Assembly (NCBI GenBank): GCA_053919585.1
Contig: CM132792.1
Strand: one strand, 5' to 3'
DNA length: 64,000 bases
Source: Euprymna scolopes
Lineage: Eukaryota
A model generated the notes under the pieces. The model had not been told where the DNA came from. It did not search any database and worked only from the letters and a program-made list of their open reading frames with translations. Positions 13,783 through 64,000 of the stretch are shown in pieces. The position numbers were made by a program, and so were the translations under genes. Numbering within the stretch: position 1 is the stretch's first letter; each line of letters begins with the position of its first letter.

Positions 13783-15129
13783 ATATTTTCAGCCTTAAGT
13801 ACTGACATAAAGTATATGCTACCTAAATTTACCGAAGAAAAAAAAACCCTGAATTTTTTCTCACTTGAACATGATGTATATATCGGCAAAAATATCGGTT
13901 AAATCAAATATTAATAATAAATAATATTACCAAATATTCAAGGTGTTCACACCTAATCGGTTCAGAAATCTTAAACTCGCATAAGGTCTGAAAATGGAAT
14001 CAGCTGAGTTAGGGTGAGGGTACATCAACAAATTTACCGAATATGTAATACATGTTTTAAATAAAATTTTAAATCTTTTAATCTTAGCTTAATATGCCAA
14101 AATGTCAAGAAAGTATTGATCGATCGATGCCTCCGTTCAGTCTCAAGAGACAATGGTCACCCCTCTGCGCATGGAATTGCGAGGCAAGTGTTACGGCTGT
14201 TACGCTATCTTCAATCACACCTCTCCTGGATCGACACTGCTTGGATCCAGTAGCGAGGAAAGGCTCAAGAGTAACTTGAAACAAAGTCACGATAAGCAGA
14301 GGAGAGCACACACAGCATATGAAAATGCTAAATGGTCAATCCACTATCATGAAATGGATTTTTATCAAAATTGGTATAAGGATTCTAGACGTAAATGTTG
14401 AGTTGCATTATATATCATCATTTTAATTTTCGTAAGGGGCCATACATAACTTGACTTCACAGGATAAAAACAGAGCCGATTCAAGACAGAAGATCGGGTA
14501 AACACACTGGCTCAATATCACTTCAGAGAGATTTTTATAAACAAAATTGGATTATCTTAAAACTTTACTCCAATTTCAAAGTCAAATATTTTGGATGAAA
14601 AAAGTCACGTTTAAAACATTTTCAATCCACGTAACGTAAAAACCATTCCACGAGCTGACGCCATGCTAAATAAATTGAATAATAATTTAAAAAAAAAGAA
14701 AAAGAAAAAAAAAGCGTTATAATTCAATTCTGGTTTGTTTGAGCTTACATTCAAATGTATACAGACGTGTGGAATGAAATACAAACCTGACGATTGGATC
14801 AACTGTGAAACTGCAGCAAAGCTAAGAATTTAGTCTTTAAAAATATTTTAGCAAATAATTAATTTAAAATCAACTATATATTCTGTTTATGTTCTCGGCC
14901 AAAGAAGGAAATATTCTTCTAGATTAAGAAATTTAGTCCCTTTTTCTAAGCTGAATTTTTCCCTACAATAAAACACATTCCATGTTTAACTGCTTTGATC
15001 GCAAGGCAAGTATATACTATTATGCAGGCATTTGATTTTTCGACGGACTTTGTTTAATATGTATTGATTGTAAATTTTGGAAATAAGTTATATTTTTTGA
15101 TTAATCATTCGTTTTTTTTTTTTAAAGCT

Positions 15130-15550
15130 TTCTTTCCCATTTTTCTTTTTAATTTCTGTGTCTCTCTTTATCACCCCCTCTCTCTTTCTCATATTCCTAA
15201 CTCTAGCTTCTCTTCTCTTCTCCCTCTCTTGCTTTCTGTTCCTTTTTCCTCTTTCTCTTTTTTCGGCTTACGCTATTCGTTTTAACTACATTATCTCCAA
15301 TTCCTTCATCCTCCTCTTCCTCACAACTCTCCTTCTCCTCCTCCTCCTCCTTGTCTCTCTCTGTTCCTTTTTTCTATTTTTATTTTCTCCTCTTCCTCAT
15401 TCTCATATCATAAAAACCTGTTTCCTCTTCTCAATTTTCTCCTTTCTCCCCCTCCTCCTACTTTCTCTCTTCACTTCACTTTCGCTCTCTTGACCACTCT
15501 CTTTGTTAATCATTTACGGCATTCGCTTCCTCCCACTACTTCTCTTATCA
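15130..15550 (+). repeat. Polypyrimidine (CT-rich) tract upstream of the HMG gene (also ~28110-29090, 41600-42580, 55990-56410)
   Basis: Strongly C/T-biased low-complexity tract ending ~190 bp before each ATG. Confidence 0.9.
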
Positions 15551-15739
15551 TTAGCTGTTTTTATTCGAGACGCCAAGTCATTTTCTGTTTGAGACGCTAC
15601 TCAAAAGATACACGCTACCATAACAAGTAAACAAGATCCACAGTGATTAACTTTTATTTTAATTAATAAGTGAGAAACGACCTTTTTTGGGGCTATTCTT
15701 TCGCAAAAAAGTTAAACAAAAAAAAAAAATTATTTCAAA

Positions 15740-16981
15740 ATGGACGCTCCAAAGATCCAGAAAAATAAAGATGAGGTTAGAAAAAAGAAAGATGTTAAAG
15801 TGAACGCTTCTTCACGCGTCCAGAAAAAAAATGGTCGTGTTAAAAAGCCCCTGAATGCTTATTTCGTCTGGTGCAAACAGTTCAGAAAACAAATACGTGA
15901 ACAAAATCCGACCATCACCATTATTGAAGCCAATGCCCTTCTCGGGAAAATATGGAGTGAAATGTCAGCGGAACAGAAAAAACCTTACTTCAAAGAGGCA
16001 GAACTTATCAAGAAACAACACCAATTAGATTATCCCGATTTCGAGTTTAAGTCGAAACCACGTGTTAAAAACCCCAACAGGTTCCATGCCTACCCCTATC
16101 AACAACATGTGGTGTATTACATACAAACGCTGCCAAGCAAAGATAGAATGCCTCAGGAATATTTTCATGAATCCACTTTCTTTGAGGTAACAAACAAAGC
16201 GGTAACTCAAGAAAATTCTCCTCACGTGGTCGGTACAGATGAAAGCATCAGATCCACGTTTTCTGAAATGCCATCCGAGACACGCGAGAATCTTTCCAAC
16301 AAGAACAGCGTATGTGTTCCGCTGCCAGAGACCGAACTCGACAAGGAGTCACGGGCATTCAGTAATGAACACCTATACAAAAGGCAGTCGAAATACAATC
16401 CCGTAATCATGACGGCTGGCCAAGACAACGATAGAGAGGTGATGGAATTTTCGTCTACTCACTCCAAATCCGAGAGCATTTCTGAAACGCTTCCTCACGC
16501 ACCTGAGCAAAACGGGGTTTATTTTCATCCTGAATGTTACGGTCATGAATGCAATAATAGTAAGTCACAAAATTTTACAGCTTTAACTTACTCGCAAGCT
16601 AAAAATAAACTAATAGAAAAGTTTCAATTCTTAGACGAGAATTCGCCTATAAATACACCAATATGCAACGCAAATATTTTTCTTGGTGTTGAGAACGATA
16701 AAAATACGACGTTTTCTGAAGAAACTCTTGAAGAAGCCCAACATCTCACTTTTGTTGAAGATTATATTATCAATGCAACACCAAATACCGAGGAACATAT
16801 CAACCAATGCACCGAAATGTTCCCCAACACGAAATCTGATATTTTGAACGATGACGATTTCGAATCCCTTAATTGTCTGGAAGATTTGGTCTCGACTTTC
16901 TGCTTAGGTGAAGATTTCCCATCTACAATGTTTTGGAACGAAGAAGGTATTAATTTGGAAGACTTTGCAGAACTGTTGTGA
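15740..16981 (+). CDS. Divergent Sox-type (SoxH/SOX30-like) HMG-box transcription factor, copy 1 (413 aa, single ORF)
   Basis: HMG box at aa ~31-108 (NGRVKKPLNAYFVW...LGKIWSEMSAEQKKPYFKEAELIKKQHQLDYPDF), basic N-terminus, acidic C-terminus (…EEGINLEDFAELL*), caaaATG start context, uninterrupted 1242-bp ORF in AT-rich DNA. Confidence 0.92.
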   Translation: MDAPKIQKNKDEVRKKKDVKVNASSRVQKKNGRVKKPLNAYFVWCKQFRKQIREQNPTITIIEANALLGKIWSEMSAEQKKPYFKEAELIKKQHQLDYPDFEFKSKPRVKNPNRFHAYPYQQHVVYYIQTLPSKDRMPQEYFHESTFFEVTNKAVTQENSPHVVGTDESIRSTFSEMPSETRENLSNKNSVCVPLPETELDKESRAFSNEHLYKRQSKYNPVIMTAGQDNDREVMEFSSTHSKSESISETLPHAPEQNGVYFHPECYGHECNNSKSQNFTALTYSQAKNKLIEKFQFLDENSPINTPICNANIFLGVENDKNTTFSEETLEEAQHLTFVEDYIINATPNTEEHINQCTEMFPNTKSDILNDDDFESLNCLEDLVSTFCLGEDFPSTMFWNEEGINLEDFAELL

Positions 16982-17572
16982 TTTTGTATATCGATTGATA
17001 ATGCAATCGATTAATTTGATCACATGATCGATGTTATCGTTTGATATCATGTGTATATATTTTCTATTGTTCAATTTGTTTAATGTTATTTATTGATTTT
17101 AATTTTTTTCATTAGTGATTTTAAAAAAGTATGACTGTCAGGAATCTCGGATAACGAAAGATAAACAGCTAAGCAAGCATACATCATATGCAAAAATTTT
17201 ACCAACGATCAAACATCATTTTTAGAGTATTGATTTATTTAACGAGCAGTTTTAACAAGTTTGTTGTTACAATAATAATAAACATAATCGGATGTGTGTG
17301 TGTGTGTTAATTTAAAACGAAACGAAACCAACGACTATACATTAAACGTACAGAAACAGTAGATACATACGAAAGAAACACTTTATAAATTAGTTTCTCG
17401 TTATTTTGTTTATTAATTATTGAATTTCTTTTTTTAATAATTCTGTAAAATAAATTTTATTTCAATAAAATGTTTCATGTAACGTTAAATTTGTTTGTTT
17501 ATTTATTGCAAAATGTAAGTTTCATCCGACAAGGCCGGATTAAGCTTACAGAGAGACATTTTTTTGTTTTCT

Positions 17573-18052
17573 GTCCTCGATGTTTTCACATGCGACAAAT
17601 GTAAAATTTCCTGTGATTTTGAACTTTCTTGATTGAAGCAATTTCGTTCCGGTTCATTTAACTTTTCCATTTTTTTCGTTTCAACAATGTTAAATTATTT
17701 TTATTCTTGATTATTAACTTTTTCGGAACACTTATCTATGGGCAGTTTTTATCCAACTTCAATTTTATTTATATACACATTTTCTTATCACTTGAAATTT
17801 GGTGCATGTTGCCAGTGTGAGTGAGAAATGTTCAAACATTGCGCTCTACGATATAAGCACAAATTTTATAACCTAATTCTAAACTTACCCTGTACCTAAC
17901 TCTAAATTGCAGTCGTGGTTAGTGGTAAAAAATTGTTAACTACCCCAAAATGCAAGAATGGCATTTACATTGAATTCAGACTAAAATGACTCCAGTCAAG
18001 AAAGTTCAAAACGGTCAGATTCATTATGTAGCCTGAATCAAAATAAGAGGTC
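17573..18052. mobile_element. Old MITE-like element with ~100-bp degenerate inverted ends (present in every unit)
   Basis: ttttgaactttcttgattgaag (~17617) is the inverse of ctccagtcaagaaagttcaaaa (~17990); similarity extends outward to gtcctc / gaggtc. Confidence 0.55.
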
Positions 18053-18162
18053 ATTTAAGGAGACTGTGATATTTTGGTCACAGCTCGTTAAATAAGTCGC
18101 TTTGATAAATAGAGATAAAAGATACCTTTGTAAACAGTACAATCCCCACGGTGGTCCCTAAG

Positions 18163-18241
18163 TACTGGGTGGGACAGAGCATCTTCTTATTTAAATAATT
18201 TAAGTCATTTAAATAAGCAAGTTGCTCTGCCTCACCCTGTA
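18163..18241. mobile_element. ~80-bp palindromic Tc1/mariner-type MITE (also 31703-31781, ~45727-45805, 59016-59094)
   Basis: ta-ctgggtgggacagagca.cttcttatttaaat...atttaaataagcaagttgctctgcctcaccctg-ta: TA-flanked CAGGGTG-type TIRs making up the whole element. Confidence 0.7.
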
Positions 18242-18389
18242 TAATGTTAACCAAGGTAAACATCAAAACAACCAATGTCATTCATTGTTGGATCAAAATT
18301 TGTTATATATATATAACGTAATAATCAGTAATAAATATATAATTTCTCATATTTAATATTGATAATTATGTTTATATAGGAAAAGGCTG

Positions 18390-19740
18390 TAAGCACCGCC
18401 AAAACTGTGGGGGCAGGTAAGTACTTTTTGACGGACCGTCTTTTTAAAAATCTACCAAAAATCAGATAATTATCCGATCAATACGAAATTTTCAGCGATT
18501 ATTAGGAGAAGAATGAACTTTATAACAGTGTACTTATTTTTCATAAACGATATTTATATATATTTTTTTTTTTGCTTACAAACCCCCCCTTGTTTTGAAG
18601 TGGTACAAATATGCTTAAAATAATCATCTGAAACTGAACACAACATATTGTGTTGTTGTAAGGGACAGAATTATAGATTAAAAAAAATAAATAAATGAAT
18701 TGTTTGCATACCTTATTTGGACGTTTGAATATCAGAACTTCGATTGTGTTTAATTATCCCGCTTTTGAGTTTTAAGTGTGAAATTCGGTGAATATGTTAA
18801 GTAAAATAATTAATTTAAGTTAAGCAAAACAAAAAAATTTTTTTTTTAATATTTATACGAAAAAAGCCATTTTAAAATTTTTGATAAATAAATTAACAAT
18901 TTTTTTTAGCGAGCCGAATAATGCATGACCATTATTAAACAGGGCATGCTTTGAATAATCGATACAAAAAAAAAAAAAATTCGATAAATATTGTGCCCTT
19001 TGTGTTAAAAATAGCATCATTTTTTTCGATCCCGTTTGAAAACGTTTGCCGCCTTTCGACTACGGTGCACCAAACGCGCTGAAATAATTTTTTTTTTATT
19101 CTGCTTTAAATTGCCCCTCCCCCCATTTTGGGGAGCCTGACCCCCACACACATACACATTAAAAACCAAACTCATACAAATGGTCACCCATCTGGTACTG
19201 GCCAGCCTCAGCTTAATAATACATTGAAATTTTCGTCACTGAAAAATAAGTTTTTTTGGCCTGTTTGGTCTTCCATAGTTTTCTTCTTATCAAACGCAAA
19301 CGTAAACAGAGTCGATCTAGACTCTAGATCGACGCGAAATATCTGGTTACCTATATGAATAAGTGGCATTATTTGAAATTTAGGTACTTATATTATAATA
19401 TTTTTGCATATTCTCTTAGAAAATCATCCTAAATCTTAGTTAGACAATAAATAAATAAATGAATTATTTCAAAAACCTTTTTTTTTTTAAATATTTATGT
19501 ACGTTTTTTGTGCAAGACAAAAAATGTCAATTGTAAACTTTTTGGGAAATTTTAACATTTAAAATTTAATTAAAAATAGTAGAAAAAGTTTTACATTATT
19601 CTGTTTTCTATATGATAAAATTCAGGGTTTTATCTTTCTGGAAAAAAAAAGTTACTCAGAAATAATGGAGTTTAATAAATGTAATTTCGTTTTAAAAAAC
19701 AACAACAACTTGATTTTGCGGCCATTTTTGGCGGTGCCTA
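18390..19740. mobile_element. Non-autonomous TIR DNA element (1351 bp), unit 1 copy
   Basis: TIRs ta(a/g)gcaccgccaaaa / ttttggcggtgccta flanked by ggctg / ggcta. Absent from unit 3 (empty site aggaaaaagctaatg at ~45942-45956). Confidence 0.8.
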
Positions 19741-19812
19741 GGCTAATGTATTAAAGGCTAAATAAAATATTTACTTGGAAATGGTTGATGGATAAAAAAA
19801 TAGATTTTAGAA

Positions 19813-21440
19813 GGAGCAAAGACAGAGGTACGTCCAGTGCTGGACTACTATGAATTAAATGGCTCCATGGAAGCGTTCACTGCCAACGTAGAAGTGTGCG
19901 CACAAACGCTAAGACAATGATGGTGATGAGGAGCGGATGTGTCACTTCTGAATTTTTGAAAGGCTTTTGTCTCTGTTGCGTCTGCACTAACATTTTTTGG
20001 ACTTCAGTTTAGTATGCAAGGATCCGGTGTGACTAAAAGATGGAGCAGGAGTTTCTGGGCTTGCAGGTCTGGAAAAAAAACAACATCCTCCAACGGAAAC
20101 AAGGAAATCAGATTCCGGAAATCCCCGGTGTGCTGACATGTCGGTGTGTGTTTTCCCTGTGTGGGAAACTTGTTTGTCATTTTTCTGTGTGTGGATGGTC
20201 ACAGTCAAGCGCCTGATGACTGCAGCAACCAAGGGATGGGAGGATGACATCAAACACCCCGATTTCTGTCACATATTATTGGAGATGCTGAGCAGGGTAC
20301 AAGAGCAGGACCCTGTTAAAGGAGACTGGAGCAGGAGCAGCAGCAAGATTACAGTCTGGCTAGATGTGAGTTCCATAGCTACAGGAATGGCATAGAAGGC
20401 AAGCGGTAATGTCATCGAAGTACAACGTTGGCTGTGTCTGACCAATGATTCTAGGCATATAAATTTAGCTGAGCTTGACGTGATGCTCAGAGTGGGAGGG
20501 GCAACTGAGCCCTCGAATTGGTCAATCATTTGGTGTGTATGCAACGGTGGATTTCTGACACCCTGTCCAGGAAGGCATGGGTAAATACAAAGGCTGCTTG
20601 TGAGATGCTGGTTAGGCAACACTTATGAACCATGCAATCTAGTGAAAGAGTATGAATTGACCATGGTTGAATTGACCATGGATGTGATGGATGTAAGAAG
20701 ACCTTTTCACCAGATTACTGCTAAAGGAAGGAGGATCCGTGTTTGAAAGATGTTCACTAGTGGAAGGAGGACTACACCAAGACCATGTAGTCAATCTTCA
20801 TTATCAAAGCGGACATCCGGGTGTGAATGAACTCTGTACTTTGTCAGTTTAATTGACCCACAAGTGTCCAACGAGAATATGAAATCTGTTGTAAAAGCCT
20901 GTGAAATCTGTCAGCTAATCGATCTGGCACCTGATCGCTGAATAACATGGAAAGTAAATGCGAAAAGCAAAACTGAAGCAGACTGGCAGTGGATATAACT
21001 AACTACAACAGCAAAACTTTTTTGACGCTTGCGGTCCATCTAGGTTTGCATCTTACAATAAGAAAGTGTCTTCCTTGAACGAGGCTCACTAATGAAGATA
21101 CTAATTGACAATTGCATTGCATTTGCTAGTGAGGAGTTCACGAGATTTGTGGATAGTTGGATTGTGCATCTGTAGTTTTGACGTGCCTGTTCGGTGAGTG
21201 GGCACAGGATCATCGAACAAAACAACCGGCAAGACTGCTGGTATAACTTCACCCAAACGATTACGTTTCACTTTCCACAGCACCAGCCAATGCATTGCAC
21301 AGGTACCATGTAAGGAATTGTTTGGGTTAAAAACTTGCATGGCAGGTGTATGACAAGATATGTCATACACCTACAGATATATATGCATCACTGAGATATT
21401 CAGCTTGTGATTAGTGTGGGTTGTTGGTGTGCTCCGTCAC
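19813..21440 (+). mobile_element. Gypsy pol relic (RT start / RNase H / integrase pieces), unit 1; homologues ~33050-35190, 46600-48600, 61340-62380
   Basis: LIPLMAVVQEQRQKVRPVLDYYELN (RT N-terminus, unit 4 ORF), WLDVSSIATG..INLAELD (RNase H), GHPGV...CEICQ (integrase Zn finger); riddled with stops. Confidence 0.75.
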
Positions 21441-21945
21441 TTTAAAGTTTTATGACCAGCGATGCAATTGCAATCATCATTTGATGATAAAAACGAATCA
21501 GATTCTGAGACAGTGAGCTATCACTTTGGTTTAAGCCAGCTCCATCAGTCAGTGATTTAGATATTAGCAGCCTCCTGGGACAGTNNNNNNNNNNNNNNNN
21601 NNNNNNNNNNNNNNNNNNNNNNNNNNNNNNNNNNNNNNNNNNNNNNNNNNNNNNNNNNNNNNNNNNNNNNNNNNNNNNNNNNNNNNNNNNNNNNNNNNNN
21701 NNNNNNNNNNNNNNGCCAGAAGACTAGACACAAGATCAGTTGTGTTTTTGAGAAGTGCACTAGGATAAGCGTACTCTGGCCTACAAAAAGTGAATGAGTT
21801 GCCCCATTGCTTAGCAATAGAGTAAGCCTTTCTCAAAGAGATGTAAAGCCTGAGAGATTAAACTTTCTAAGACTAAACAGAGCCAGACCTCAGTAAGACA
21901 ACAACAAGACTATTGTAACACTGATTTATATCTTAAATCTATTAT

Positions 21946-21983
<38 letters not shown>

Positions 21984-22379
21984 TATACATGCATGTTTTC
22001 TTACCTTATAATACAATGTTGGGAAGAAGAAAGAATTCCAAATAGATGTGTAATTTCTTATTTTTTCTTGAACTCAGATTCACCTGGGTTAGTTAAACTG
22101 GTTCCTTCAAATGCATTTACTGCATCTTACACAAAAGCTGACCAAGGTTGGCAATCCATTGTTGGCAATAATTTTTTAACACTTTCAACAGCCTGTCACA
22201 GTTCCAATGGCGAATACCATAGATTGACAAACTTGGAATCAGTTCAGTATCTTGCTGACCTGTTCTAAGCCACTTTTTAAGCTGGCTGCTGCATCATTCA
22301 TCAAACCTTAAGGAGGAACCGGTTGATGGCTTCTCTAATGGAGGCTTCTCTTGCTGAAAGTGGTGGGTGTGACCAGCTC

Positions 22380-23860
22380 AATGAAGGTGATTATGTGGCA
22401 CTACGTTCAGACTGACATCAGTCAGTCAGGACACACACAGGATGCGACACACACAGCAATGACGTGTGATGCAAGCATCATCACTGCGTACAAGAATAAG
22501 TGTTACCATGGTGACTGCAATAACTACTGTGGAATTTTTCTCCTTAGTTTTATTGGAAAAATCTTTGGTTGAATCGTCCCCAACAGCCTGCAGTTGCTTA
22601 CAGAGCATGTATATGTTAGTAACAATATGAGCTTATAACAAGAAGATCAACTGTCGACATTACTTTTGTTTTGCCTATGAGAGTTCCAGGACAAAATGTT
22701 ACAAACATAGGCAATTGCTGTACATCACCTTCATCGACCTGACTAAAGCCTTTGACCTTATCACCAGAAAATGACATTTCATTTGTTCAAGAGAATTGCA
22801 TGTTACTTCAGACTCCTAAATGTATCACATTTATTCATAAGGACATGCAGTACAATACGATGACTCTTTTAAAAACCCTTTCCCAATCAAGAGTGAAACA
22901 GGGTTGTACAATTGCTTCAACAGTCTTTAGCATCTTCTTTTTTCTGCTGTTTTCCTACACATTCAACAAGTCAGAGGATGGAGTGAATCTCCATACCAGA
23001 GACAGTGGCAGAATTTTCAACCTTGGTCACGTTTTAACTAAGAACAAAATGCATGACGTGAAATATATGTGAGATGCTCTTTGCTGATGATGCAGCGCTG
23101 ATGAGACACTCTGCTGAATCATTGCAGTGACTCATCCATTGCTTTGTGCATGCATGTAAAAGACTAACATCTTTGACCAATATGTATGCATTAACCTAAA
23201 CATCAATATTGAGGCCGTCAAAAAATGTACATACATCGGCTCCAATGTATCCAGGAATATCTCTCTGGACGAAGAAATCACCAAACATTTAAGCAAATTA
23301 GCAACAAATATGGCTAGCTTGATAAAGAGTGTCTCAAACAACAATATGCAAATCAACAATACTCAGCAAACAGCTCTAGCAGGACAACATCTCAAAGAAA
23401 ATCATCTTTGATCAGGCAAATAACCCGTGCATGTTTGCTCTGCTTACCTAACAACGACTTTGGCAGCTTTGCTGTGCCAGGCAAAAAGATACTGAGAAGA
23501 GCCGAAAGGATCTTCTTTATAGTGAGATCATATTAGATCAGTAGGAAATCATGTCATACGCTATAAGGATGTTTGTAAGCAAGACATAAGGGTAGTTGGC
23601 ATCGACCCAGCAGGCTGGGAGTTTGCAGCTGCTGAAGAAGAGCTGTAAAGACACGTTCCAAGAGGAGTGAAAAGAGGAGAGACCAGCAGAGGAGAGAGAA
23701 CACATATTGCACAGATTGCAACTCTTACATCTGTTGCGTCTGTAACTCAGCCTGTCAATCCAAGATAGGCTTGCATGTTTCAGAAGATGCTGCAATTTAC
23801 CAACAGACGAATCTGAGGTGCAGAACACCATTGTCTTCTGAAACAGATGGATGCAAACAA
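22380..23860 (+). mobile_element. RTE LINE relic, unit 1; homologues ~36130-37610, 49150-50440, 63300-64000
   Basis: DASIITAYKNKCYHGDCNNYCGIFLLSFIGKIF, FIDLTKAFDL, RVKQGCTIASTVF, MLFADD. Confidence 0.85.
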
Positions 23861-24479
23861 AAATGCTCGATGATGTTCTGTCATGTCCGTCCATCAAGAC
23901 AAGGTTGGGAATATGGACATGACCTTATCAATTGTGAAAAACGCGGAAGTTACAAATTTAGTTCGATTTAGAGATGAGTCTAAAAAATGTGATTAAAACA
24001 AGAAATAACGATGCAGAAGAGCAACAGATTCAACTCATTTATTTAGATATTAAATTATATTCCTCACATGTTGAACTTGATGTTAATTCAACTCATTAAA
24101 GATGTGGAGGGTGTTGAAGTCTTTGCTGACAATTCATATATTTCCCATTTCCAAAACTATGTAATGTGTAATGCTGCTTTGTGGTAGATATTAATATTAT
24201 GTGGATAGTGCAGCATCAGTAGGATTGAGAAATAGAAAATCTACAAAGCAAAAATAAAAATCTGAATAAGACAGCAAAAAACAAAACAACAAAAAAAACG
24301 ATAATTAGTTAAACAGAATGTCGATAGGAAAGCAAAAACTGTTATGTAGTATAGTTAGTGAATCGGTGAGGACATTGATATGTCTGCCTGACCTGGTAGA
24401 CTGTGTTGGTTTAGGTGAGACGCCGTTGCTGAAATAAACTGTATGCGTAGGCTACGTTGGTTTCTGACTTGTGGTATCG

Positions 24480-25360: not shown

Positions 25361-26040
25361 TCACTTCATTGGAGAAACGTAAAGAAAATTGCTTGAACAT
25401 TAGGTTTAGCGATCCTGTTGCAGTTTCAAATCACTACCTCTATTTTTAATTCCCCCCCCCCTTTTCATCATCGATTTCGCTACACATGTCGGAATTCAAA
25501 TATATCAAACAAAACGCCAATAATTCAGGCAATTGACTTTTTACTTTTTAGACGACTGATGCTACCAGTCACGTTGACCGAATCTTCCAGCCAAAGGATT
25601 TCCAGCAGTGGCAGCCGTCTTAGCAGCAGGTCAAACATCTCTTATAAGGTCTAAACAACCAGCACTTATCAAGGCTAATAAGTTTTTCACTAATGCGATT
25701 CACTACTGCTTGCCTTCTGAGACCCACCAGCAGCAAACTTCACTTTCACCTCTGGCCTGCAACCTCGCTCCTCCGATCTGCAACCTCGCATGCACCTGGT
25801 TCCCTACTGACCATTCGTTCCTTATCACTGACCCTACGTCCTCACTGTCGTCCATTCCTTAACACTGACCCCACATTCTCAGTGTCCACTGACCATTCAA
25901 GATCGCCCTGACGGCCAGCCGATCGTCCAGACCCAGCGAGAAACCCTAAACCAGAGTACCTGGTCCAGCCCTCCAGACCAAGCCTCCGGTAACATGCGAC
26001 CTTCCGGACAACTAGCATCCAGCTCATACAATTTTTCGCA

Positions 26041-26229: not shown

Positions 26230-26434
26230 ATTTCTTCGCAAATAAAAGGCGAACCTTCGCCTTTAACCAAACAACCTGTGTCGGTCATTCTTCTTGCCTT
26301 TTTGCTGTTTACTTTTGCCCGTGTCTACATTGTTAGTTGTAGGGTCGATTGTCCCAGTATAACCGGCCCCGCAGCAATCCAATTCTTTGCATCCTATTGA
26401 TTTCGCTCAAACTCCTTAAGCGCCGCGCTATTTG

Positions 26435-51800: not shown

Positions 51801-54800
51801 GAAAAATGTTAGAAAAATCTTTTGGAAATTTGCTTTCTTTGAATGCCGATTGGATGAAAAGCCAACGCCTCTGTCACATAGGGATGTTTTCAACTATGTC
51901 GGTGTGAAAAGACAGAATGTTTGTTTTTATGCCCACAGAATGGTGTGTGTGTAGAAAACAGATGCACACACAACAAGAACGCTCCTTGTCCAGCGACGTT
52001 TAATGTTTGTGGTGAGTCGCTACAGTACCCCACTATTAGACAGAATGTCGATAGGAAAGCAAAAACTGTTACGTAGTATAGTTAGTGAATCGGTGAGGAC
52101 ACTTGATATGTCTGCCTGACCTGGTAGACTGTGTTTGTTTAAGTGAGTCGCCGTTGCTGAAATAAACTGTATGCGTAGGCTACGTTGGTTTCTGACTTGT
52201 GGTATCACCGTGAGCATGTGTAAGGTGTCTGAAGACTACCGTGCACTCCGTCATTCCGGATGAATACATGAGTCCATGTGTTAATATTCTGGGGAACATG
52301 AGTAGTGACATTTTTGTGGGCTGGCTTTAATATTCAGAAGTTTTGACATTTATTCCTTCACACAGGAGGTGTAGCTCATTGGGTATGGCATGTGCTGCGG
52401 TGTAGCTGGTGTGTCCATCTCTCTGGGTAAGGTCAGTGAGGTTCTGTAAACCATTTCGTCAGAAGACAAGCCGATGTCCATTTTAACAATGGATTGAATA
52501 CCGAGAAGCACAAAAGCCAGGCATTCTATCCATCTGATGGGGTCAGAGTATGCTTTAAGAGATGCCTTTAACTGTCGAGGCAAGGCGCTCAATCATGCTG
52601 TTTGCTGTTGGGTGATAAGACATAGTGCATATGTGTCTGCATCCAAGCAGGTTGGACAGCTCGAAAAAAAGATGTGAGTCAAATTATCAGTTGTAATGGT
52701 ATTAGGTATGCCATAACAGGATATCCAATGTATAATGAGAGCTTTGGCGACAGTTTAAGCAGAAATATCTCTAATCGGGAATGGCTTCAGGCCATCTCGA
52801 ATACCTTGTGGGAGTGGACCCATTATGTCTATGTGGATATGCTGAAAACGAGCCTTGGGGGTTAAAAACGTTGCGGGAGGACTCTTGATGTGCCGTTGAA
52901 TCTTGGACTTCTGGCAAGGAAGACAACCCCGTGTCCATTCTCATATATCTCTATTGATGGCAGTCCATACAAAACGTGATGTCACCAATTTCTGAGTCAA
53001 ATGGACGCCAGGATGTGATAGACTCTGCAGCTTTGTAAACACAACTCGCCTATGCTTGAGGGGCACATATGGACGCTCGTGACCATATTACTTCATTGGA
53101 GAAAAGTAAAGAAAATTGCTTGAACGTTAGGTTTAGCGATCCTGTTGCAGTTTCAAATCACCACCTCCATTTTTAATTCTTTCCCCAACCCCTTTTCATC
53201 ATCGATTTCGCTACACATGTCGGAATTCAAATATATCAAACAAAACGCCAATAATTCAGGCAATTGACTTTTTACATTTTAGACAACTGATGCTACCAGT
53301 CACGTTGACCGAATCTACCAGCCAAAGGATTTCCAGCAGTGGCAGCCGTCTTAGCAGCAGGTCAAACATCTCTTATGAGGTCTAAACAACCAGCCCTTAT
53401 CAAGGCTAATAAGTTTTTCACTAATGCGATTCACTACTGCTTGCCTTCTGAGACCCACCAGCAGCAAACTTCACTTTCACCTCTGGCCTGCAACCTCGCT
53501 CCTCCGATCTGCAACCTCGCATGCACCTTGCTCCTTTGCTCTGCAACCTCGCCTGCATCTGGTTCCCTACTGACCATTCGTTCTTTAAAACTGACCTCTA
53601 CGTTCTCAGTGTTGTCCGTTCCTTATCACTGACCCCACGTCCTCAGTGTCGTCCATTCCTTAACACTGACCCACATTCTCAGTGTCCACTGACCGTTCCA
53701 GATCGCCCTGACGGCCAGCCGATCATCCAGACCCAGCGAGAAACCCTAAACCACACTACGTTTAGAGAACCTGCTCCAGCCCTCCAGACCAAGCCTCCGG
53801 TAACATGCGACCTTCCGGACAACTAGCATCCAGATCATACAATTTTTTGCATTTTTTATTTTTTTTTACCACTTATCAAGACCAAGAGGCCACTACAGGA
53901 TAACGGTTAAAAAGTGTACAGTAGAAATTGGACAATATAGTAATGGTTAGTAAATGGAAATTCGGTAAATTTGTTAACAAGTGAAACGGCTAATCAAGAA
54001 CTTGTTTACGTTAGACTTGAATACAATCATATTGTAGTCAGCTTTCTTCGCAAATAAAAGGCGAACCTTCACCTTTAACCAAACAACCTGTGTCGGTCAT
54101 TCTTCTTGCCTTTTTGCTTTTTACTTTTGCCCGTGTCTACCTTGTTAGTTGTAGGGTCGATTGTCCCAAGATAACCGGCCCCGCAACAATCCAATTCTTT
54201 GCATCCTATTGATTTCGCTTGAACTCNNNNNNNNNNNNNNNNNNNNNNNNNNNNNNNNNNNNNNNNNNNNNNNNNNNNNNNNNNNNNNNNNNNNNNNNNN
54301 NNNNNNNNNNNNNNNNNNNNNNNNNNNNNNNNNNNNNNNNNNNNNNNNNNNNNNNNNNNNNNNNNNNNTCCAATAATTAACTTTTAGCTTAATTGAGTTT
54401 ATCTCTATTTTTATCACAAGTATTTTTATATCTTTCAATAAATCAGTTTTAGTTGGATCGAGTTTATAGATTTGAAAATTGTAAAATTCTTTATTTTTAC
54501 TTAAATTTTACTTGAATTGTGAATCATTAATTAATTTAAATTTAACTCGTTTAATATCGTTTAATATATATAATTTAGCCTTTTCATCGAATTAGTAACT
54601 AAAATAATATTTTGAATTATGATGCGAGATGAATTACTTCCCTTTAACCGTTTCTTTAAGTTATTTTAAATAATTTAACTCGACTCTTTTTTTTTTAATG
54701 GCGAAGTCGGTATTTCATGTTTTCAGCGTTAAGTTCTGACATAAAATAAAAAGAATAATTTTTTGTCACTTGATAATGATGTATATATCGGCAAAAGTAT

Positions 54801-56599
54801 GGGCTGAAATCAAATATTAATAATAAATAATATTACATTATATATTATATTCACACATAATCGGGCCAAAAAGCTTCAACTCGCATAAGGCCTGGAGGTG
54901 GAATTAGCTGAGTTTGAGTGAGGGTTAATCAACAAATTTATCAAATATGTAATAAATGTTTTAATCGTTTAACCTTAGCTTAAAATGCCAAGAAAAGTTG
55001 AGAAACTCGGCACCCGACATAAACATGTATTCTAGCTAGTATCGATTGATCGATCGATGCCTTCGTTCAGTCTCAAAAGACAATGGACATTGGACACCCC
55101 TATAAGGTCTGCGTATGGAATTGGGAGGCAAGGGCTACGCAATCTCAAGAGTGACGGGAAACAATGGCGAGATAAGCGAAGAACACACACAGCATCTGGA
55201 AATGCTAAATGGTCAATCACAATTATGAAATGGATTTGAATCAAAATTGATATAAGGATTCTAGACGTAAATGTTCAGTTGCATTATATAATCATTTTTT
55301 ATCTTCGTAAGGGACCATACATAACTTGACTTCACGGAATAAAAACAGAGCCGATCCAAGACAGCAGAGCGAGTAAATACACGGGCTCAATATCACTCCA
55401 GATAGATTTTTATAAACAAAATTGGATTATCTTAAAACTTTACTTCAATTTCAAAGTCGAATATCATGGATGAAAAAAGTCACGTTTAAAACATTTTCAA
55501 TCCACGTAACGTAAAAACCACTCCACGAGCTGACGCCGTGCTAAATAAATTGAATAATAATTTAAAAAAAAAAAAAAGCGTTATAATTCAATTCTGGTTT
55601 GTTAGAGCTTACATTCAAATGTATACAGACGTGTGGAATGAAATACAAACCTGACGTTCGGATCAACTGTGAAACTGCAGCAAAGCTAAGAAGCATTTAA
55701 TCTTTAAAAATATTTTAGCAAATTATTAATTTAAAGCCCAACATCTATTCTGTTTATGTTCTCAGCCAAAGAAGGAAATATTCTTATAGATTAAGGAATG
55801 TAGTCCCTTTTTCTAAGCTGAATTTTTCCCTACAATAAAACACATTCCATGTTTAACTGCTTTGATCGCAAGGCAAGTATATACTACTATGCAAGCATTC
55901 GATTTTTTCGACGGATTTTGTTTAATATGTATTGATTGTAAATTTTGGAAATAAGTTATATTTTTTGATTAATCATGCGTTTTTTTAAAGCTTTCTTCCC
56001 CATTATTTTAAAATTTCTTTATCTATCTTTATCCCCCCCCCTCTCTCTCTTTCTCATATTCCTATCTCTAGCTTCTCCTCTCTCCTCCCTCTCTTGCTTT
56101 CTGTTCCTTTTCCCTCTTTCTCTTTTTTCGACTCACGCTATTCGTTTTAACTACATTATCTTTAATTCCTTCATCCTCCTCTTCCTCACCACTCTCCTCC
56201 TACTCCTCTCTCTCTCTCTCTTTCTCTTTCTCCTTTTTTTCTTTCTCCTCCTCCTCATTCTCATATCATAAAAACCTGTTTCCTCTTCTCAATTTTCTCC
56301 TTTCTCCCCCTCCTCCTACTTTCTCTCTTCACTTCTCTCTCACTCTCTTGACCACTCTCTTTGTTAATCATTTACGGCATTCGCTTCCTCCCACTACTTC
56401 TCTTATCATTAGCTGTTTTTATTCGAGACGCCAAGTCATTTTCTGTTTGAGAGGCTACTCAAAAGATACACGCTACCATAACAAGTAAACAAGATCCACA
56501 GTGATTAACTTTTATTTTAATTAATAAGTGAGAAACGACCTTTTTGGGGGCTATTCTTTCGCAAAAAAGTTAAACAAAAAAAAAAAAAATTATTTCAAA

Positions 56600-57838
56600 A
56601 TGGACGCTCCAAAGATCCAGAAAAATAAGGATCAGGTTAGAAAAAAGAAAGATGTTAAAATGAACGCTTCACGCGTCCAGAAAAAAAATGGTCGTGTTAA
56701 AAAGCCCCTGAATGCTTATTTCGTCTGGTGCAAACAGTTCAGAAAACAAATACGTGAACAAAATCCGACCATCACCATTATTGAAGCCAATGCCCTTCTC
56801 GGGAAAATATGGAGTGAAATGTCAGCGGAACAGAAAAAACCTTACTTCAAAGAGGCAGAACTTATCAAGAAACAACACCAATTAGATTATCCCGATTTCG
56901 AGTTTAAGTCGAAACCACGTGTTAAAAACCCCAACAGGTTCCATGCCTACCCCTATCAACAACATGTGGTGTATTACATACAAACGCTGCCAAGCAAAGA
57001 TAGAATGCCTCAGGAATATTTTCATGAATCCACTTTCTTTGAGGTAACAAACAAAGCGGTAACTCAAGAAAATTCTCCTCACGTGGTCGGTACAGATGAA
57101 AGCATCAGATCCACGTTTTCTGAAATGCCATCCGAGACACGCGAGAATCTTTCCAACAAGAACAGCGTATGTGTTCCGCTACCTGAGACCGAACTCGACA
57201 AGGAGTCACCGGCATTCAGTAATGAACACCTATACAAAAGGCAGTCGAAATTCAATCCCGTTACCATGACGGCTGGCCAAGACAACGATAGAGAGGTGAT
57301 GGAATTTTCGTCTACTCACTCCAAATCCGAGAGCATTTCTGAAACGCTTCCTCACGCACCTGAGCAAAACGGGGTTTATTTTCATCCTGAATGTTACGGT
57401 CATGAATGCAATAATAGTAAGTCACAAAATTTTACAGCTTTACCTTTCTCGCAAGCTAAAAATAAACTAATGGAAAAGTTTCAATTCTTAGACGAGAATT
57501 CGCCTATAAATACACCAATATGCAACGCAAATATTTTTCTTGGTGTTGAGAACGATAAAAATACGACGTTTTCTGAAGAAACTCTTGAAGAAGCCCAACA
57601 TCTCACTTTTGTTGAAGATGACATTATCAATGCAACACCAAATACCGAGGAACATATCAACCAATGCACCGAAATGTTCCCCAACACGAAATCTGATATT
57701 TTGAACGATGACGATTTCGAATCCCTTAATTGTCTGGAAGATTTGGTCTCGACTTTCTGCTTAGGTGAAGATTTCCCATCTACAATGTTTTGGAACGACG
57801 AAGGTATTAATTTGGAAGACTTTGCAGAACTGTTGTGA
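56600..57838 (+). CDS. Sox-type HMG-box transcription factor, copy 4 (412 aa)
   Basis: Intact ORF. Start placed at the homologous ATG rather than the upstream GTG (56528). Confidence 0.92.
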   Translation: MDAPKIQKNKDQVRKKKDVKMNASRVQKKNGRVKKPLNAYFVWCKQFRKQIREQNPTITIIEANALLGKIWSEMSAEQKKPYFKEAELIKKQHQLDYPDFEFKSKPRVKNPNRFHAYPYQQHVVYYIQTLPSKDRMPQEYFHESTFFEVTNKAVTQENSPHVVGTDESIRSTFSEMPSETRENLSNKNSVCVPLPETELDKESPAFSNEHLYKRQSKFNPVTMTAGQDNDREVMEFSSTHSKSESISETLPHAPEQNGVYFHPECYGHECNNSKSQNFTALPFSQAKNKLMEKFQFLDENSPINTPICNANIFLGVENDKNTTFSEETLEEAQHLTFVEDDIINATPNTEEHINQCTEMFPNTKSDILNDDDFESLNCLEDLVSTFCLGEDFPSTMFWNDEGINLEDFAELL

Positions 57839-59244
57839 TTTTGTATGTCGATTGATAATGCAATCGATTAATTTGATCACATGATCGATGTTATCGTTTG
57901 ATATCATATGTATATATTTTCTATTGTTCAATTTGTTTAATGTTATTTATTGATTTTAATTTTTTTCATTAGTGATTTTAAAAAAGTATGACTGTCAGGA
58001 ATCTCGGATAACGAAAGATAAACAGCTAAGCAAGCATACATCATATGCAAAAATTTTACCAACGATCAAACATCATTTTTAGAGTATTGATTTATTTAAC
58101 GAGCAGTTTTAACAAGTTTGTTGTTACAATAATAATAAACATAATCGGATGTGTGTGTGTTAATTTAAAACGAAACGAAACCAACGACTATACATTAAAC
58201 GTACAGAAACAGTAGATACATACGAAAGAAACACTTTATAAATTAGTTTCTCGTTATTTTGTTTATTAATTATTGAATTTCTTTTTTTAATAATTCTGTA
58301 AAATAAACTTTATTGAAATAAAATGTTTCATGTAACGTTAAATTTGTTTGTTTATTTATTGCAAAATGTAAGTTTCATCCGACAAGGCCGGATTAAGCTT
58401 ACAGAGAGACATTTTTTTCGTTTTCTGTCCTCGATGTTTTCACATGCGACAAATGTAAAATTTCCTGTGATTTTGAACTTTCTTGATTGAAGCAATTTCG
58501 TTCCGGTTCATTTAACTTTCCCATTTTTTCGTTTCAACAATGTTAAATTATTTTTATTCTTGATTATTAACATTTTCGGAACACTTATCTATGGGCAGTT
58601 TTTATCCAACTTCAATTTTATTTATATACACTTTTTCTTATCACTTGAAATTTGGTGCATGTTGCCAGTGTGAGTGAGAAATGTTCAAACATTGCGCTCT
58701 ACAATATAAGCACAAATTTTATAACCTAATTCTAAACCTACCCTGTACCTTACTCTAAATTGCAGTCGTGGTTAGTGGTAAAAAAATGTTAACTACCCCA
58801 AAATGCAAGAATGGCATTTACATTGAATTCAGACTAAAATGACTCCAGTCAAGAAAGTTCAAAACGGTCAGATTCATTATGTAGCCTGAATCAAAATAAG
58901 AGGTCATTTAAGGAGACTGTGATATTTTGGTCACAGCTCGTTAAATAAGTCGCTATGATAAATAGAGATAAAAGATACCTTTGTAAACAGTACAATCCCC
59001 ACGGTGGTCCCTAAGTACTGGGTGGGACAGAGCAACTTCTTATTTAAATAATTTAAGTCATTTAAATAAGCAAGTTGCTCTGCCTCACCCTGTATAATGT
59101 TAACCAAGGTAAACATCAAAACAACCAATGTCATTCATTGTTGGATCAAAATTTGTTATATATATATATAACGTAATAATCAGTAATAAATATATAATTT
59201 CTCATATTTAATATTGATAATTATGTTTATATAGGAAAAGGCTG

Positions 59245-60596
59245 TAAGCACCGCCAAAACTGTGGGGGCAGGTAAGTACTTTTTGACGGACCGTCTTTTT
59301 AAAAATCTACCAAAAATCAGATAATTATCCGATCAATACGAAATTTTCAGCGATTATTAGGAGAAGAATGAACTTTATAACAGTGTACTTATTTTTCATA
59401 AACGATACTTATATATATATATTTTTTTTTGCTTACAAACCCCCCCTTGTTTTGAAGTGGTACAAATATGCTTAAAATAATCATCTGAAACTGAACACAA
59501 CATATTGTGTTGTTGTAAGGGACAGAATTATAGATTAAAAAAAAAATAAATGAATTGTTTGCATACCTTATTTGGACGTTTGAATATCAGAACTTCGATT
59601 GTGTTTAATTATCCCGCTTTTGAGTTTTAAGTGTGAAATTCGGTGAATATGTTAAGTAAAATAATTAATTTAAGTTAAGCAAAACAAAAAAAATTTTTTT
59701 TTAATATTTATACGAAAAAAGGCATTTTAAAATTTTTGATAAATAAATTTACAATTTTTTTTAGCGAGCCGAATAATGTATGATCATTATTAAACAGGGC
59801 ATGCTTTGAATAATCGATACAAAAAAAAAAAAAAATTCGATAAATATTGTGCCCTTTGTGTTAAAAATAGCATCATTTTTTCGATCCCGTTTGAAAACGT
59901 TTGCCGCCTTTCGACTACGGTGCACCAAACGCGCTGAAATAATTTTTTTTTTATTCTGCTTTAAATTGCCCCTCCCCCCATTTTGGGGAGCCTGGCCCCC
60001 ACACACATACACATTAAAAACCAAACTCATACAAATGGTCACCCATCTGGTACTGGCCAGCCTCAGCTTAATAATACATTGAAATTTTCGTCACTGAAAA
60101 ATAAGTTTTTTTGGCCTGTTTGGTCTTCCATAGTTTTCTTCTTATCAAACGCAAACGTAAACAGAGTCGATCTAGACTCTAGATCGACGCAAAATATCTG
60201 GTTACCTATATGAATAAGTGGCATTATTTGAAATTTAGGTACTTATATTATAATATTTTTGCATATTCTCTTAGAAAATCATCCTAAATCTTAGTTAGAC
60301 AATAAATAAATAAATGAATTATTTTAAAAACCTTTTTTTTTTTTAAATATTTATGTACGTTTTTTGTGCAAGACAAAAAATGTCAATTGTAAACTTTTTG
60401 GGAAATTTTAACATTTAAAATTTAATTAAAAATAGTAGAAAAAGTTTTACATTATTCTGTTTTCTATATGATAAAATTCAGGGTTTTATCTTTCTGGAAA
60501 AAAAAAGTTACTCAGAAATAATGGAGTTTAATAAATGTAATTTCGTTTTAAAAAACAACAACAACTTGATTTTGCGGCCATTTTTGGCGGTGCCTA
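59245..60596. mobile_element. Full-length copy of the same TIR element, unit 4
   Basis: Same TIRs and interior as 18390-19740. Confidence 0.8.
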
Positions 60597-62545
60597 GGCT
60601 AATGTATTAAAGGCTAAATAAAATATTTACTTGGAAATGGTTGATGGATAAAAAAATAGATTTTAGAAAAATAAATCTGATTTCTTGATGTCATCCATTT
60701 GCAAGTAAATATATCTACTTAGAAAGCACTTTAATTAATAATAAATATATAATTTCTCATATTTAAGAGAAAAAATTGTGGAAACCATAAAATGGCTTCT
60801 GTTCAAGTATATGTGTGTGCATCATGTCAAATCAAGTTGAAAGGAGGAAAGAAAATCAAGATGGCAGCGCCCACAACTTTTATAACTAGCGATATCACAA
60901 ACTGACTCAAAATCCCACTGCTCGACTGCATAAAATTAGGCTTCATAGAGAACGCAGACTGACGGTTGTATGAGAATCCTTGGAGAATGTTGTTACTGAG
61001 TCACTTTGTTTTCTTGCTTTTTTTTTTGCTTGCTTTTTTTTTTTTTTTTGTACTTTCGTTTTTGTTGTACAAGCTATTTTTGGCAAATTTTATGGACAAA
61101 TATGACATGAGTTGATTCTTGAATTCGAAAGATTCCTTGCTGATCTCTCTGCTATTGAATGGTTTGAAAAAGCTAAACGTGTTACCAGGCTGTTCAACTT
61201 ATAAGAACCCATACCCAAAAGAGTCTCTCATCCAAATGCAGTTCACAAAAGGAGTCTACACGATGTACAACCAACTCGGGAATGACATACATTATACAAC
61301 AGGAGATGTGAAAATTGGTGGAAGAAGTGTGGGAGGGGCGCTTAGGTTGCAGAGTATAAGGTGCCTGATAGCATTAGAGAAAAGTATGAGAAAAAAATAC
61401 TGGGGCCTCCTGATTCCTTTAATGGCGGTCGTCCAGGAGCAAAGACAGAAAGTACGTCCAGTGCTGGACTACTATGAATTAAATGGCTCCATGGAAGCGT
61501 TCACTGCCAACGTAGAAGTGTGCGCACAAACGCTAAGACAATGATGGTGATAAGGAGAGGATGTGTCACTTCTGAATTTTTGAAATGCTTTTGTCTCTGT
61601 TGCGTCTGCACTAACATTTTTTGGACTTCAGTTTAGTATGCAAGGATCCGGTGTGACTAAAAGATGGAGCAGGAGTTTCTGGGCTTGCAGGTCTGGAAAG
61701 AAAACAACATCCTCCAACGGAAACAAGGAAATCAGATTCCGGAAATTCCCGGTGTGCTGACATGTCGGTGTGTGTTTTCCCTGTGTGGGAAACTTGTTTG
61801 TCATTTTTCTGTGTGTGGATGGTCACAGTCAAGCGCCTGACGACTGCAGCAACCAAGGGATGGGAGGATGACATCAAACACCGCGATTTCTGTCACATAT
61901 TATTGGAGATGCTGAGCAGGGTACAAGAGCAGGACCCTGTTAAAGGAGACTGGAGCAGGAGCGGCAGCAAGATTACAGTCTGGCTAGATGTGAGTTCCAT
62001 AGCTACAGGAATGGCATAGAAGGCAAGCAGTAATGTCATCGAAGTACAATGTTGGCTGTGTCTGACCAATGATTCTAGGCATATAAATTTAGCTGAGCTT
62101 GATGTGATGCTCAGAGTGAGAGGAGCAACTGAGCCCTCGAATTGGTCAATCATTTGGTGTGTATGCAACGGTGGATTTCTGACACCCTGTCCAGGAAGGC
62201 ATGGGTAAATACAAAGGCTGCTTGTGAGATGCTGGTTAGGCAACACTTATGAACCATGCAATCTAGTAAAAGAGTATGAATTGACCATGGTTGAATTGAC
62301 CACCGGTGAATTGACCATGGATGTGATGGATGTAAGAAGATCTTTTCACCAGATTACTGTTAAAGGAAGGAGGATCCACGTCACTTTAAAGTTTTATGAC
62401 CAGCGATGCAATTGCAATCATCATTTGATGATAAAAGCGGATCAGATTCTGAAACAGTGAGCTATCACTTTGGTTTAAGCCAGCTCCATCAGAAAGTGAG
62501 TTAGATATTTGCAGCCTCCTGGGACAGTCGGGACTCCCTGCTCGT

Positions 62546-62607
<62 letters not shown>

Positions 62608-62851
62608 TATCTACCTCCTTGCCAGAAGACTAGACACAAGATCAGTTGTGTTTTTGAGAAGTGCACTAGGATAAGCGTACTCTGGCCTAGAAAAAGTGAA
62701 TGAGTTGCCCCATTGCTTAACAATAGAGTAAGCCTTTCTCAAAGAGATGCAAAGCCTGAGAGATTAAACTTTCTAAGACTAAACAGAGCCAGACCTCAGT
62801 AAGACAACAACAAGACTGTTGTAACACTGATTTATATCTTAAATCTATTAT

Positions 62852-62909
<58 letters not shown>

Positions 62910-64000
62910 TATACGTGCATGTTTTCTTACCTTATAATACAATGTTGGGAAGAAGAAAGAATTCCAAATAGATGTGTAATTTCTTATTTTTTCTTGAACC
63001 CAGATTCACCTGGGTTAGTTAAACTGGTTCCTTCAAATGCATTTACTGCATCTTACACAAAAGCTGACCAAGGTTGGCAATCCATTGTTGGCAATAATTT
63101 TTTAACACTTTCAACAGCCTGTCACAGTTCCAATGGCGAATACCATAGATTGACAAACTTGGAATCAGTTCAGTATCTTGTTGAACGTTTCTAAGCCACT
63201 TTTTAAGCTGGCTGCTGCATCATTCATCAAACCTTAAGGAGGAACCGGTTGATGGCTTCTCTAATGGAGGCTTCTCTTGCTGAAAGTGGTGGGTGTGACC
63301 AGCTCAATGAAGGTGATTATGTGGCACTACGTTCAGACTGACATCAGTCAGTCAGGACACACACAGGATGCGACACACACAGCAATGACGTGTGATGCAA
63401 GCATCATCACTGCGTACAAGAATAAGTGTTACCATGGTGACTGCAATAACTACTGTGGAATTTTTCTCCTTAATTTTATTGGAAAAATCTTTGGTTGAAT
63501 CGTCCCCCAACAGCCTGCAGTTGTTTACAGAGCATGTATATGTGAGTAACAATATGAGCTTATAACAAGAAGATCAACTGTCGACATTACTTTTCTTTTG
63601 CGTATGAGAATTCCAGGACAAAATGTTACAAACAGAGGCAATTGCTGTACTTCACCTACACATTCAACAAATCAGAGGATGGAGTGTATCTCCATACCAG
63701 AGACAGTGGTAGAATTTTAAACCTTGGCCACATTTTAACTAAGACTAAAATGCATGACGTAAAATTTATGTGAGATGCTTTTTGCTGATGATGCACCACT
63801 GATGAGACACTCTGCAGAATCATTGCAGTGACTCATCCATTGCTTCGTGCATGCATGTAAAAGACTATCTTTGACCAATATGTATGCATCCTTGACCATA
63901 ACCAAAACACCAATATTGAGGCTGTCCAAAAATGTACATACATCGGCTCCAATGTATCCAGGAATATCTCTCTTGATGAAGAAATCACCGAATATATCAG

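Follow-up and report, generated by a model that had tools for sequence, protein, structure and literature searches.

A putative Sox-derived activator gene in a transcribed tandem array on contig C10 of Euprymna scolopes

Sox factors are dosage-sensitive developmental regulators and are almost always encoded by single genes in animals. Coding macrosatellites and ampliconic transcription-factor families are already known, among them D4Z4/DUX4, Dux, multicopy Sry, and Dox; an array of a Sox-type gene in a mollusc is new. Such an array begins within a 64-kb stretch of the Euprymna scolopes genome (the window, C10:48,670,001-48,734,000 of a 5.9-Gb assembly in which C10 measures 162 Mb) and extends beyond its right end. 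With a probability of roughly 70%, the locus is read here as a genuine tandem amplification of a Sox-derived activator gene that is transcribed and maintained by selection; copy number would raise the dose of the product.

D4Z4/DUX4 and the Dux array of the mouse resemble this locus in that kilobase-scale units lie head to tail, each with an intronless open reading frame (ORF) that encodes a DNA-binding activator whose acidic activation region lies at the C-terminus and, in the present protein, is predicted; a likely retrogene origin and restricted expression are further points of likeness. The head-to-tail units of at least 1 kb that carry the same ORF (nine units at 13.5-14.1 kb, eight of them with an intact ORF) place the locus among the protein-coding macrosatellites. 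It differs from D4Z4 in having an HMG box, whereas DUX4 has a double homeobox, in the length and likeness of its units (~13.5 kb and 93-99% alike, as opposed to the nearly identical 3.3-kb units of D4Z4), and in that every unit has its own polyA signal. Multicopy Sry in rats and some other rodents also comprises several near-identical, intact, and intronless Sox-type copies. However, the Sry copies are Y-linked and dispersed or palindromic, whereas the present copies form a regular tandem on a large contig of a mollusc, with no evidence of sex linkage; chr43, the putative Z reported for one bobtail squid, is small (PMC10925132). The Dox family of Drosophila simulans, which consists of amplified HMG-box meiotic drivers, is likewise a young and fast-expanding HMG-box family. 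Dox genes, in contrast, are descended from protamine-like, basic HMG proteins, lie on the X, and are silenced by hairpin RNAs, whereas the array protein is acidic.

SoxH/SOX30 shares a single Sox-type HMG box with the array protein, and the box of a cuttlefish relative of that protein, automatically annotated as SOX15_30, is closest to SOX30. The array gene differs from SoxH in that it lacks the HMG-box intron that is strictly conserved in SoxH (PMC13219418), is present in multiple copies, and encodes 412 rather than 750-1010 amino acids (aa). Its box is 37-38% identical to that of human SOX30, and the motif at the start of helix 1 is KPLNAYFVW, which is invariant across the family in this genome, instead of the canonical signature RPMNAFMVW.

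Layout of the array

Exactly four ORFs of at least 250 aa are found in the window, all on the plus strand and arranged head to tail with a spacing of 13.5-14.1 kb, at 15740-16981, 29282-30520, 42759-43997, and 56600-57838. Read from a common MDAPK start, they are intact, encode 412-413 aa, and are 96-99% identical. Copy 1 owes its 413 residues to an extra Ser codon, an in-frame 3-nucleotide (nt) insertion, and the part of it that encodes the HMG box (aa 32-108) lies at 15833-16063; copies 2 to 4 encode 412 aa. Two ORF calls (42696-43997 and 56528-57838) begin with GTG and are in-frame upstream extensions of copies 3 and 4, whose real ATGs are at 42759 and 56600.

In self-BLAST, the surrounding DNA falls into collinear units that follow each other head to tail, are offset by 13.3-14.5 kb, and are 93-99% identical in DNA. 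On the plus strand, unit 1 occupies 15290-28833 (13,544 bp), unit 2 28834-42323 (13,490 bp), and unit 3 42324-56154 (13,831 bp), while unit 4 (56155-64000) is cut by the window end and extends to ~70223 in window numbering. They are preceded by the tail of a partial unit in the same orientation (14264-15289), which consists of spacer corresponding approximately to unit positions 11934-12920. Five further units lie beyond the right window end, and the whole array, as traced through the assembly and its flanks, comprises nine units over ~115 kb, from window position 14264 to ~+129,764. Eight of the nine ORFs are intact, and that of unit 7 is broken by a 38-nt deletion at ORF nt 670. Unit 8 has an intact ORF but lacks unit positions 1-399, which comprise the greater part of the 5' untranslated region (UTR) as well as the mapped transcript start; in place of the lost ~400 nt (C10:48,781,168; ~110977-111124 in window numbering) there is ~150 nt of unrelated sequence. 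Another intact copy (L009), with 82% amino-acid identity, resides ~60 kb upstream, and a broken copy lies closer to the array.

The units differ from each other by 1-7% and carry private indels. Their single-nucleotide polymorphism (SNP) patterns are mosaic, which is read as the probable result of unequal exchange or gene conversion. The spacers contain very-high-copy repeats, such as a 580-bp, polyA-tailed insert resembling a short interspersed nuclear element (SINE), which is present before copies 2, 3, 6, and 9 and absent before copies 1, 4, 5, 7, and 8. The insert before copy 2 lies at 28255-28834 on the plus strand; it is located ~450 nt upstream of the ATG and ~90 nt upstream of the transcript start.

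Runs of N occur at 13598-13782, 21585-21714, and 54227-54368, none of them within an ORF, and the first adjoins the left edge of the array. The left and right flanks of the gap at 21585-21714 map to unit 2 with offsets of 13756 and 13755, and those of the gap at 54227-54368 also have equal offsets. Because the flanks thus map to adjacent positions of unit 2 at the same offset, each of these two internal gaps is placed inside the spacer of a single unit (units 1 and 3, respectively). It is possible that whole units are hidden at any of the N gaps; a single stretch of 83 kb without gaps spans six units.

The first-pass annotation, made from the letters of the window, had reported the four intact ORFs, counted at least four copies, and noted that the array runs off the right end, all of which agrees with the nine units found here. 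Its reading of the locus as a Sox-like, intronless gene amplified in tandem within one lineage is likewise supported, and the C-terminus of the protein is acidic. It had also described the remainder of each unit as decayed transposons, which is verified in part: none of the other ORFs of at least 90 aa in unit 2 had a Pfam match, and the spacers are rich in high-copy repeats. The locus was not recognized as a described one at that stage, and none of the papers found on Sox genes, sex chromosomes, and the genomes of cephalopods describes it; neither Sox nor HMG is named in the genome paper of the cuttlefish.

Selection on the ORFs and their transcription

Selection against indels and against amino-acid replacements keeps the ORFs intact. 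When the array copies are compared with L009, dN/dS, the ratio of the non-synonymous to the synonymous substitution rate, is 0.37-0.43 (about 0.38) at a synonymous divergence (dS) of ~0.24 by the Nei-Gojobori method. The signal is clearest relative to the next 1.65 kb downstream in the same units: the ORF has ~20-fold fewer distinct indel events (2 vs 53; Fisher p = 3e-11), and 45 of the 53 downstream events have lengths not divisible by three. The proportion of variable columns is 4-fold lower in the ORF (5.0% vs 20%; p = 5e-28). The spacer also exceeds the synonymous sites in variability (p = 3e-7), so that gene conversion favouring the ORF may have a share in its conservation, besides purifying selection. 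Within the array, dS is 0.012-0.047, as would be expected of a young array. The eight intact copies have 17 synonymous and 39 non-synonymous segregating sites, corresponding to an omega of ~0.56 (binomial p = 0.037).

Transcription of the array is restricted to some samples. In runs X1 and X5 of study P1, word depth over unit 1 climbs from 20-40 to 175-240 at ~15380, lies at 100-1200 across the ORF, and amounts after ~17348 to ~2 in X1 or ~20 in X5. Unit 2 has the same pattern, with an X1 depth of 250-1400 over ORF copy 2. Since ORF and spacer have equal copy number, this contrast in depth does not arise from DNA. The transcribed segment of unit 1 (15380-17348, plus strand) corresponds to an RNA of ~2 kb with no splice joints in the RNA contigs, and comprises a 5'UTR of ~350 nt that contains no ATG, the ORF, and a 3'UTR of ~360 nt, in which an AATAAA signal (17277-17282) lies directly upstream of the drop in depth. 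At position 16675, X1 has two variants, and the variants that dominate in X1 are not those that dominate in X5, which indicates that more than one copy or allele is transcribed. One RNA contig variant (16675 T>C) is absent from all nine reference units and offers a hint, and only a hint, of haplotype differences.

Essentially no reads over the ORF were found in X23 and X24 (raw-read polyA RNA-seq) or in X21 (single-cell). The content of the paralogue L019, which is located on C24, was 0.74 in X5, 0.65 in X1, and 0.00 in five other runs of the species, and this best representation in X5 and X1 indicates that the family is co-expressed in one kind of sample. The total lack of transcription together with neutral decay of the ORFs, which the first-pass annotation had named as an outcome that would overturn its reading, is not what was found, given the RNA in X1 and X5 and the 2 vs 53 indels.

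Other RNA signals at the locus were considered separately. The runs of study P2 (X2, X3, X4, and X6, labelled 'RNA?') were rejected as expression evidence on account of a flat depth of ~10-20 over ORF and spacer; this flat depth and read ends in Nextera adaptor indicate that they are probably tagmented DNA, for example from an assay for transposase-accessible chromatin (ATAC) or whole-genome sequencing. A contig from X8 joins 15866 to 16726 inside the ORF and thus skips 859 nt, which is not a multiple of three. Splicing was set aside as the explanation, as canonical splice ends are found at no allowed shift, and the contig may represent an artefact or, in that animal, a deleted copy. The SINE-like element (28255-28834 and 41745-42323) has very high depth in every RNA run, with word depth of up to ~200,000 in X1 and hundreds to ~1,800 reads in X23 and X24. 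Two spacer segments (18334-19900 and 31925-32318) are likewise deeply covered in all RNA runs, even where the gene is silent, and are probably expressed interspersed repeats.

The encoded protein and its family

Each ORF in the window contains one Pfam HMG_box (aa 33-100, E ~4e-19), and the boxes of the four copies are identical. The best 22 matches of the window protein in the PDB are SOX or SRY chains, bar one SRY-HMGB1 fusion chain, with E-values down to 2e-16 (SOX17, 63.5 bits; SOX18, 62.1; SOX11, 61.3; SOX30, 59.3), and HMGB and LEF boxes score below the SOX and SRY chains. In the AlphaFold model, which was computed from a 10-sequence family alignment, only aa 31-104 fold; three helices are predicted at aa 39-96 with a predicted local distance difference test (pLDDT) score of 77-88, and the remainder scores ~30 (<50), with short helices at 380-387 and 405-411. 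Residues 1-112 have an isoelectric point (pI) of 10.1, the last 73 aa have one of 4.05, and that of the whole protein is 5.3. These last 73 aa contain 19 Asp or Glu residues, one Lys or Arg, and many Phe, Leu, and Trp residues, a composition of the kind that is usual for an acidic activation domain.

Classically, a Sox protein is required to have at least 50% identity to the HMG box of SRY. The box of the array protein is ~30% identical to that of SRY and ~35% identical to that of SOX17, as counted by hand in phmmer alignments, and thus stays below this threshold. By sequence, the protein falls outside the classical Sox criteria, yet it is clearly Sox-derived. The differences within the box include the wedge (FM to YF), the NxEIS segment of helix 2, and the C-terminal YKY (to FEF). 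The wedge, the NxEIS segment, and YKY are positions of DNA contact in Sox-DNA structures. As several canonical contact positions differ, the DNA specificity of the protein may be shifted relative to that of canonical Sox factors.

A search of the genome with the array protein returned 47 matches, and the family comprises ~20 loci, of which about a dozen are paralogues on C24, C34, and C2. Intact or near-intact single-exon paralogues reside on C24 (at 87.49, 89.47-89.62, 100.23, and 101.77-101.80 Mb) and on C34, and the C2 copy is riddled with stops. In a maximum-likelihood tree, the C10 copies and L009 form a clade with 100% support and a long stem, and the C24/C34 clade is its sister. On C24, within 89,497,526-89,624,765, the paralogue pairs L019(+)/L018(-) and L016(+)/L015(-) are symmetric about a centre near 89.561 Mb, which points to a large inverted duplication whose arms measure at least 64 kb. 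The pairs are 89-95% alike in DNA, and the proteins of L015 and L016 differ by ~2 residues.

Outside this genome, an exhaustive HMMER search of 1.84 billion representatives returned one full-length relative, P0001 (E = 7e-73, 45% identity), and all other matches cover the HMG box only. In the sister species designated organisms B, C, and D, 7-25% of the words of the gene are present. The P0001/P0155 cluster includes a cuttlefish protein that is automatically annotated as 'SOX15_30 [Acanthosepion/Sepia pharaonis]' and whose gene is single-exon, as 1773 nt encode 590 aa; this relative accords with a genome of the decapodiform cephalopods. Its HMG box, which has RPLNAFFVW at the start of helix 1, scores 100 bits against SOX30, compared with 77 against SOX9, the next single-box SOX chain; the two-box SRY-HMGB1 fusion chain reaches 95.5 bits in total. 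The cuttlefish and SOX30 boxes share the segments SEEQKKPYY and PGW. Across the paralogue boxes, the position of SOX30 varies from first to fourth, and no margin sets it apart. The annotations of the ten best single-box representatives are mixed (a SOX-30-like protein in a frog, 'sox-17' in a sea slug, and unnamed proteins) and settle no Sox group, and a homologous-protein search with the single protein and then with the family alignment gave no result.

SoxH has an intron inside the HMG box that is strictly conserved across bilaterians, and in the scallop the gene comprises seven exons (PMC13219418). None of the copies and paralogues of the present family has this intron, and the HMG box is uninterrupted in all of them. 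When the genome was searched with the HMG box of human SOX30, no clearly canonical SoxH with introns emerged; short matches to the N-terminal half of the box were returned on C3 and C26. Given the strict conservation of the SoxH box intron, the intronless family is best explained by an old retrocopy or a complete loss of introns, followed by duplication at the DNA level. A SoxH/Sox30 origin is favoured for the family, with chances limited to about two in three because the boxes of this genome no longer discriminate between Sox groups.

Interpretation and alternatives

The favoured reading of the locus as a maintained and transcribed amplification begins with an ancestral SoxH/Sox30 gene, from which the family most likely descends via an intronless copy, probably a retrocopy. 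This intronless copy would then have spread by DNA-level duplication into the lineage-specific family of ~20 loci, and the C10 locus could have expanded by unequal crossing-over with mosaic exchange between units. In the encoded protein, the basic N-terminal Sox-type HMG box is expected to bind and bend DNA, and the acidic tail studded with hydrophobic residues, which is separated from the box by a long disordered middle part, would activate transcription. The protein would thus be a sequence-specific activator whose dose is raised through copy number. By analogy with SoxH in other molluscs, its place of action may be the germline, with spermatogenesis as the most likely process. SoxH expression is biased towards the testis in octopus, oyster, and scallop, and scallop spermiogenesis depends on it (PMC11202624, PMC13219418). 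A germline role is a reasonable guess because the likely ancestor, SoxH/Sox30, is a spermatogenesis factor in both molluscs and vertebrates. The first-pass annotation had proposed the germline or testis, sex determination, or early embryo activation as a plausible setting; what the RNA runs show is expression restricted to some samples.

The array shows that a Sox-type factor can follow the ampliconic route that is otherwise known for DUX, Obox/Rhox, and testis genes of sex chromosomes. In molluscs, SoxH, the likely ancestor, acts in spermatogenesis and is a candidate gene of the sex pathway, which makes the locus a concrete handle on the poorly understood regulation of the cephalopod germline. 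It also provides natural material for the study of changes at the DNA-contact residues of an HMG box, and of the evolution of tandem arrays via unequal exchange, as reflected in the mosaic SNPs and in the SINE-like insert of four of the nine units.

Several observations weigh against this reading. The number of units was read from the assembled sequence, and copy number therefore rests on the assembly. Within the array, omega is just ~0.56 and synonymous variation is reduced, so that ORF-biased gene conversion could contribute to the conservation of the ORFs. In copies outside the window, three singleton amino-acid changes fall in the HMG box, one of which hits the invariant Asn of PLNAYF. X1 and X5 belong to a single study, and their label 'RNA?' is a guess; the signal from other studies is limited to X8, in the form of a contig of depth 7 with the non-canonical internal skip of 859 nt. 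Finally, the boxes of the family in this genome fail to single out SOX30, which leaves the SoxH origin to the cuttlefish relative.

A more far-reaching proposal, which is put forward only tentatively and is doubtful at present, is that the C10 array and the inverted-duplicate paralogues on C24 together constitute an amplicon of a retrogene derived from SoxH, specific to cephalopods and restricted to the germline. The force behind its copy number would be either genetic conflict (drive, or the suppression of drive, in spermatogenesis) or the demand for a pioneer-type activator in a burst at one brief stage, for example during spermatid differentiation or zygotic genome activation, which would make it the molluscan counterpart of DUX4/Dux or Dox.

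The array could also be a selfish or conflict-driven amplicon. Acting in spermatogenesis, the HMG protein would then be a segregation distorter, the suppressor of one, or a sperm-competition factor, and an arms race, not a demand for regulatory dose, would drive copy number, with the Dox family of Drosophila simulans and Slx/Sly of the mouse as parallels. Fast evolution, as seen in the long stem to the C10 clade and the 45% identity to the cuttlefish relative, would fit such an amplicon, as would the repeated amplification of the family, including the large inverted duplication of paralogues on C24, and the relaxed or mixed constraint within the array (omega ~0.56). Expanding families of HMG-box drivers are documented (bioRxiv 10.1101/2021.08.05.454923; PMC10292708). 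However, the array protein is acidic overall (pI 5.3) and has an activation-domain-like tail, unlike the basic, protamine-derived HMG proteins; its long-term dN/dS of 0.38 is that of ordinary purifying selection; and the locus offers no evidence of sex linkage, small-RNA suppressors, or testis expression. This explanation is considered unlikely.

It is quite improbable that the array is a neutral, recent segmental duplication, in which the copies would be intact because of their youth, transcription would be incidental, and copy number would have no function. Compared with the flanks in the same units, the frequency in the ORFs is ~20-fold lower for indels and 4-fold lower for variable sites, the older copy with 82% identity has remained intact at a dS of 0.24 with a dN/dS of 0.38, and RNA depth is high and sharply bounded. 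In favour of neutrality, the internal dS of 0.012-0.047 indicates a young array, one copy is already broken, unit 8 has no mapped transcript start, and omega within the array is only marginally below 1 (p = 0.037). An assembly artefact, in which haplotypes or collapsed reads were stitched into a false tandem array, draws on the three N gaps in or beside the array, the left edge that adjoins one of them, and a copy number known from the assembly rather than from reads, but is highly improbable given nine units rather than two, their differences of 1-7% with private indels and mosaic SNPs, the SINE-like insert before four of the nine genes, the upstream copies, the six units inside one gap-free stretch of 83 kb, and the RNA contigs that bear several distinct variants.

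The left flank of the array contains further features. Diverged fragments (80-84%) of the unit spacer, with no gene, were identified by sequence comparison at 891-2130 on the plus strand. A full-length match to 5S ribosomal RNA (Rfam RF00001, 46 bits, above the gathering score) lies at 5045-5160 on the plus strand and represents a 5S gene or a 5S-derived repeat. An A-rich satellite occupies 11708-12722, with a period of 22 bp (43 bp as a dimer), ~46 copies, and 92% matches.

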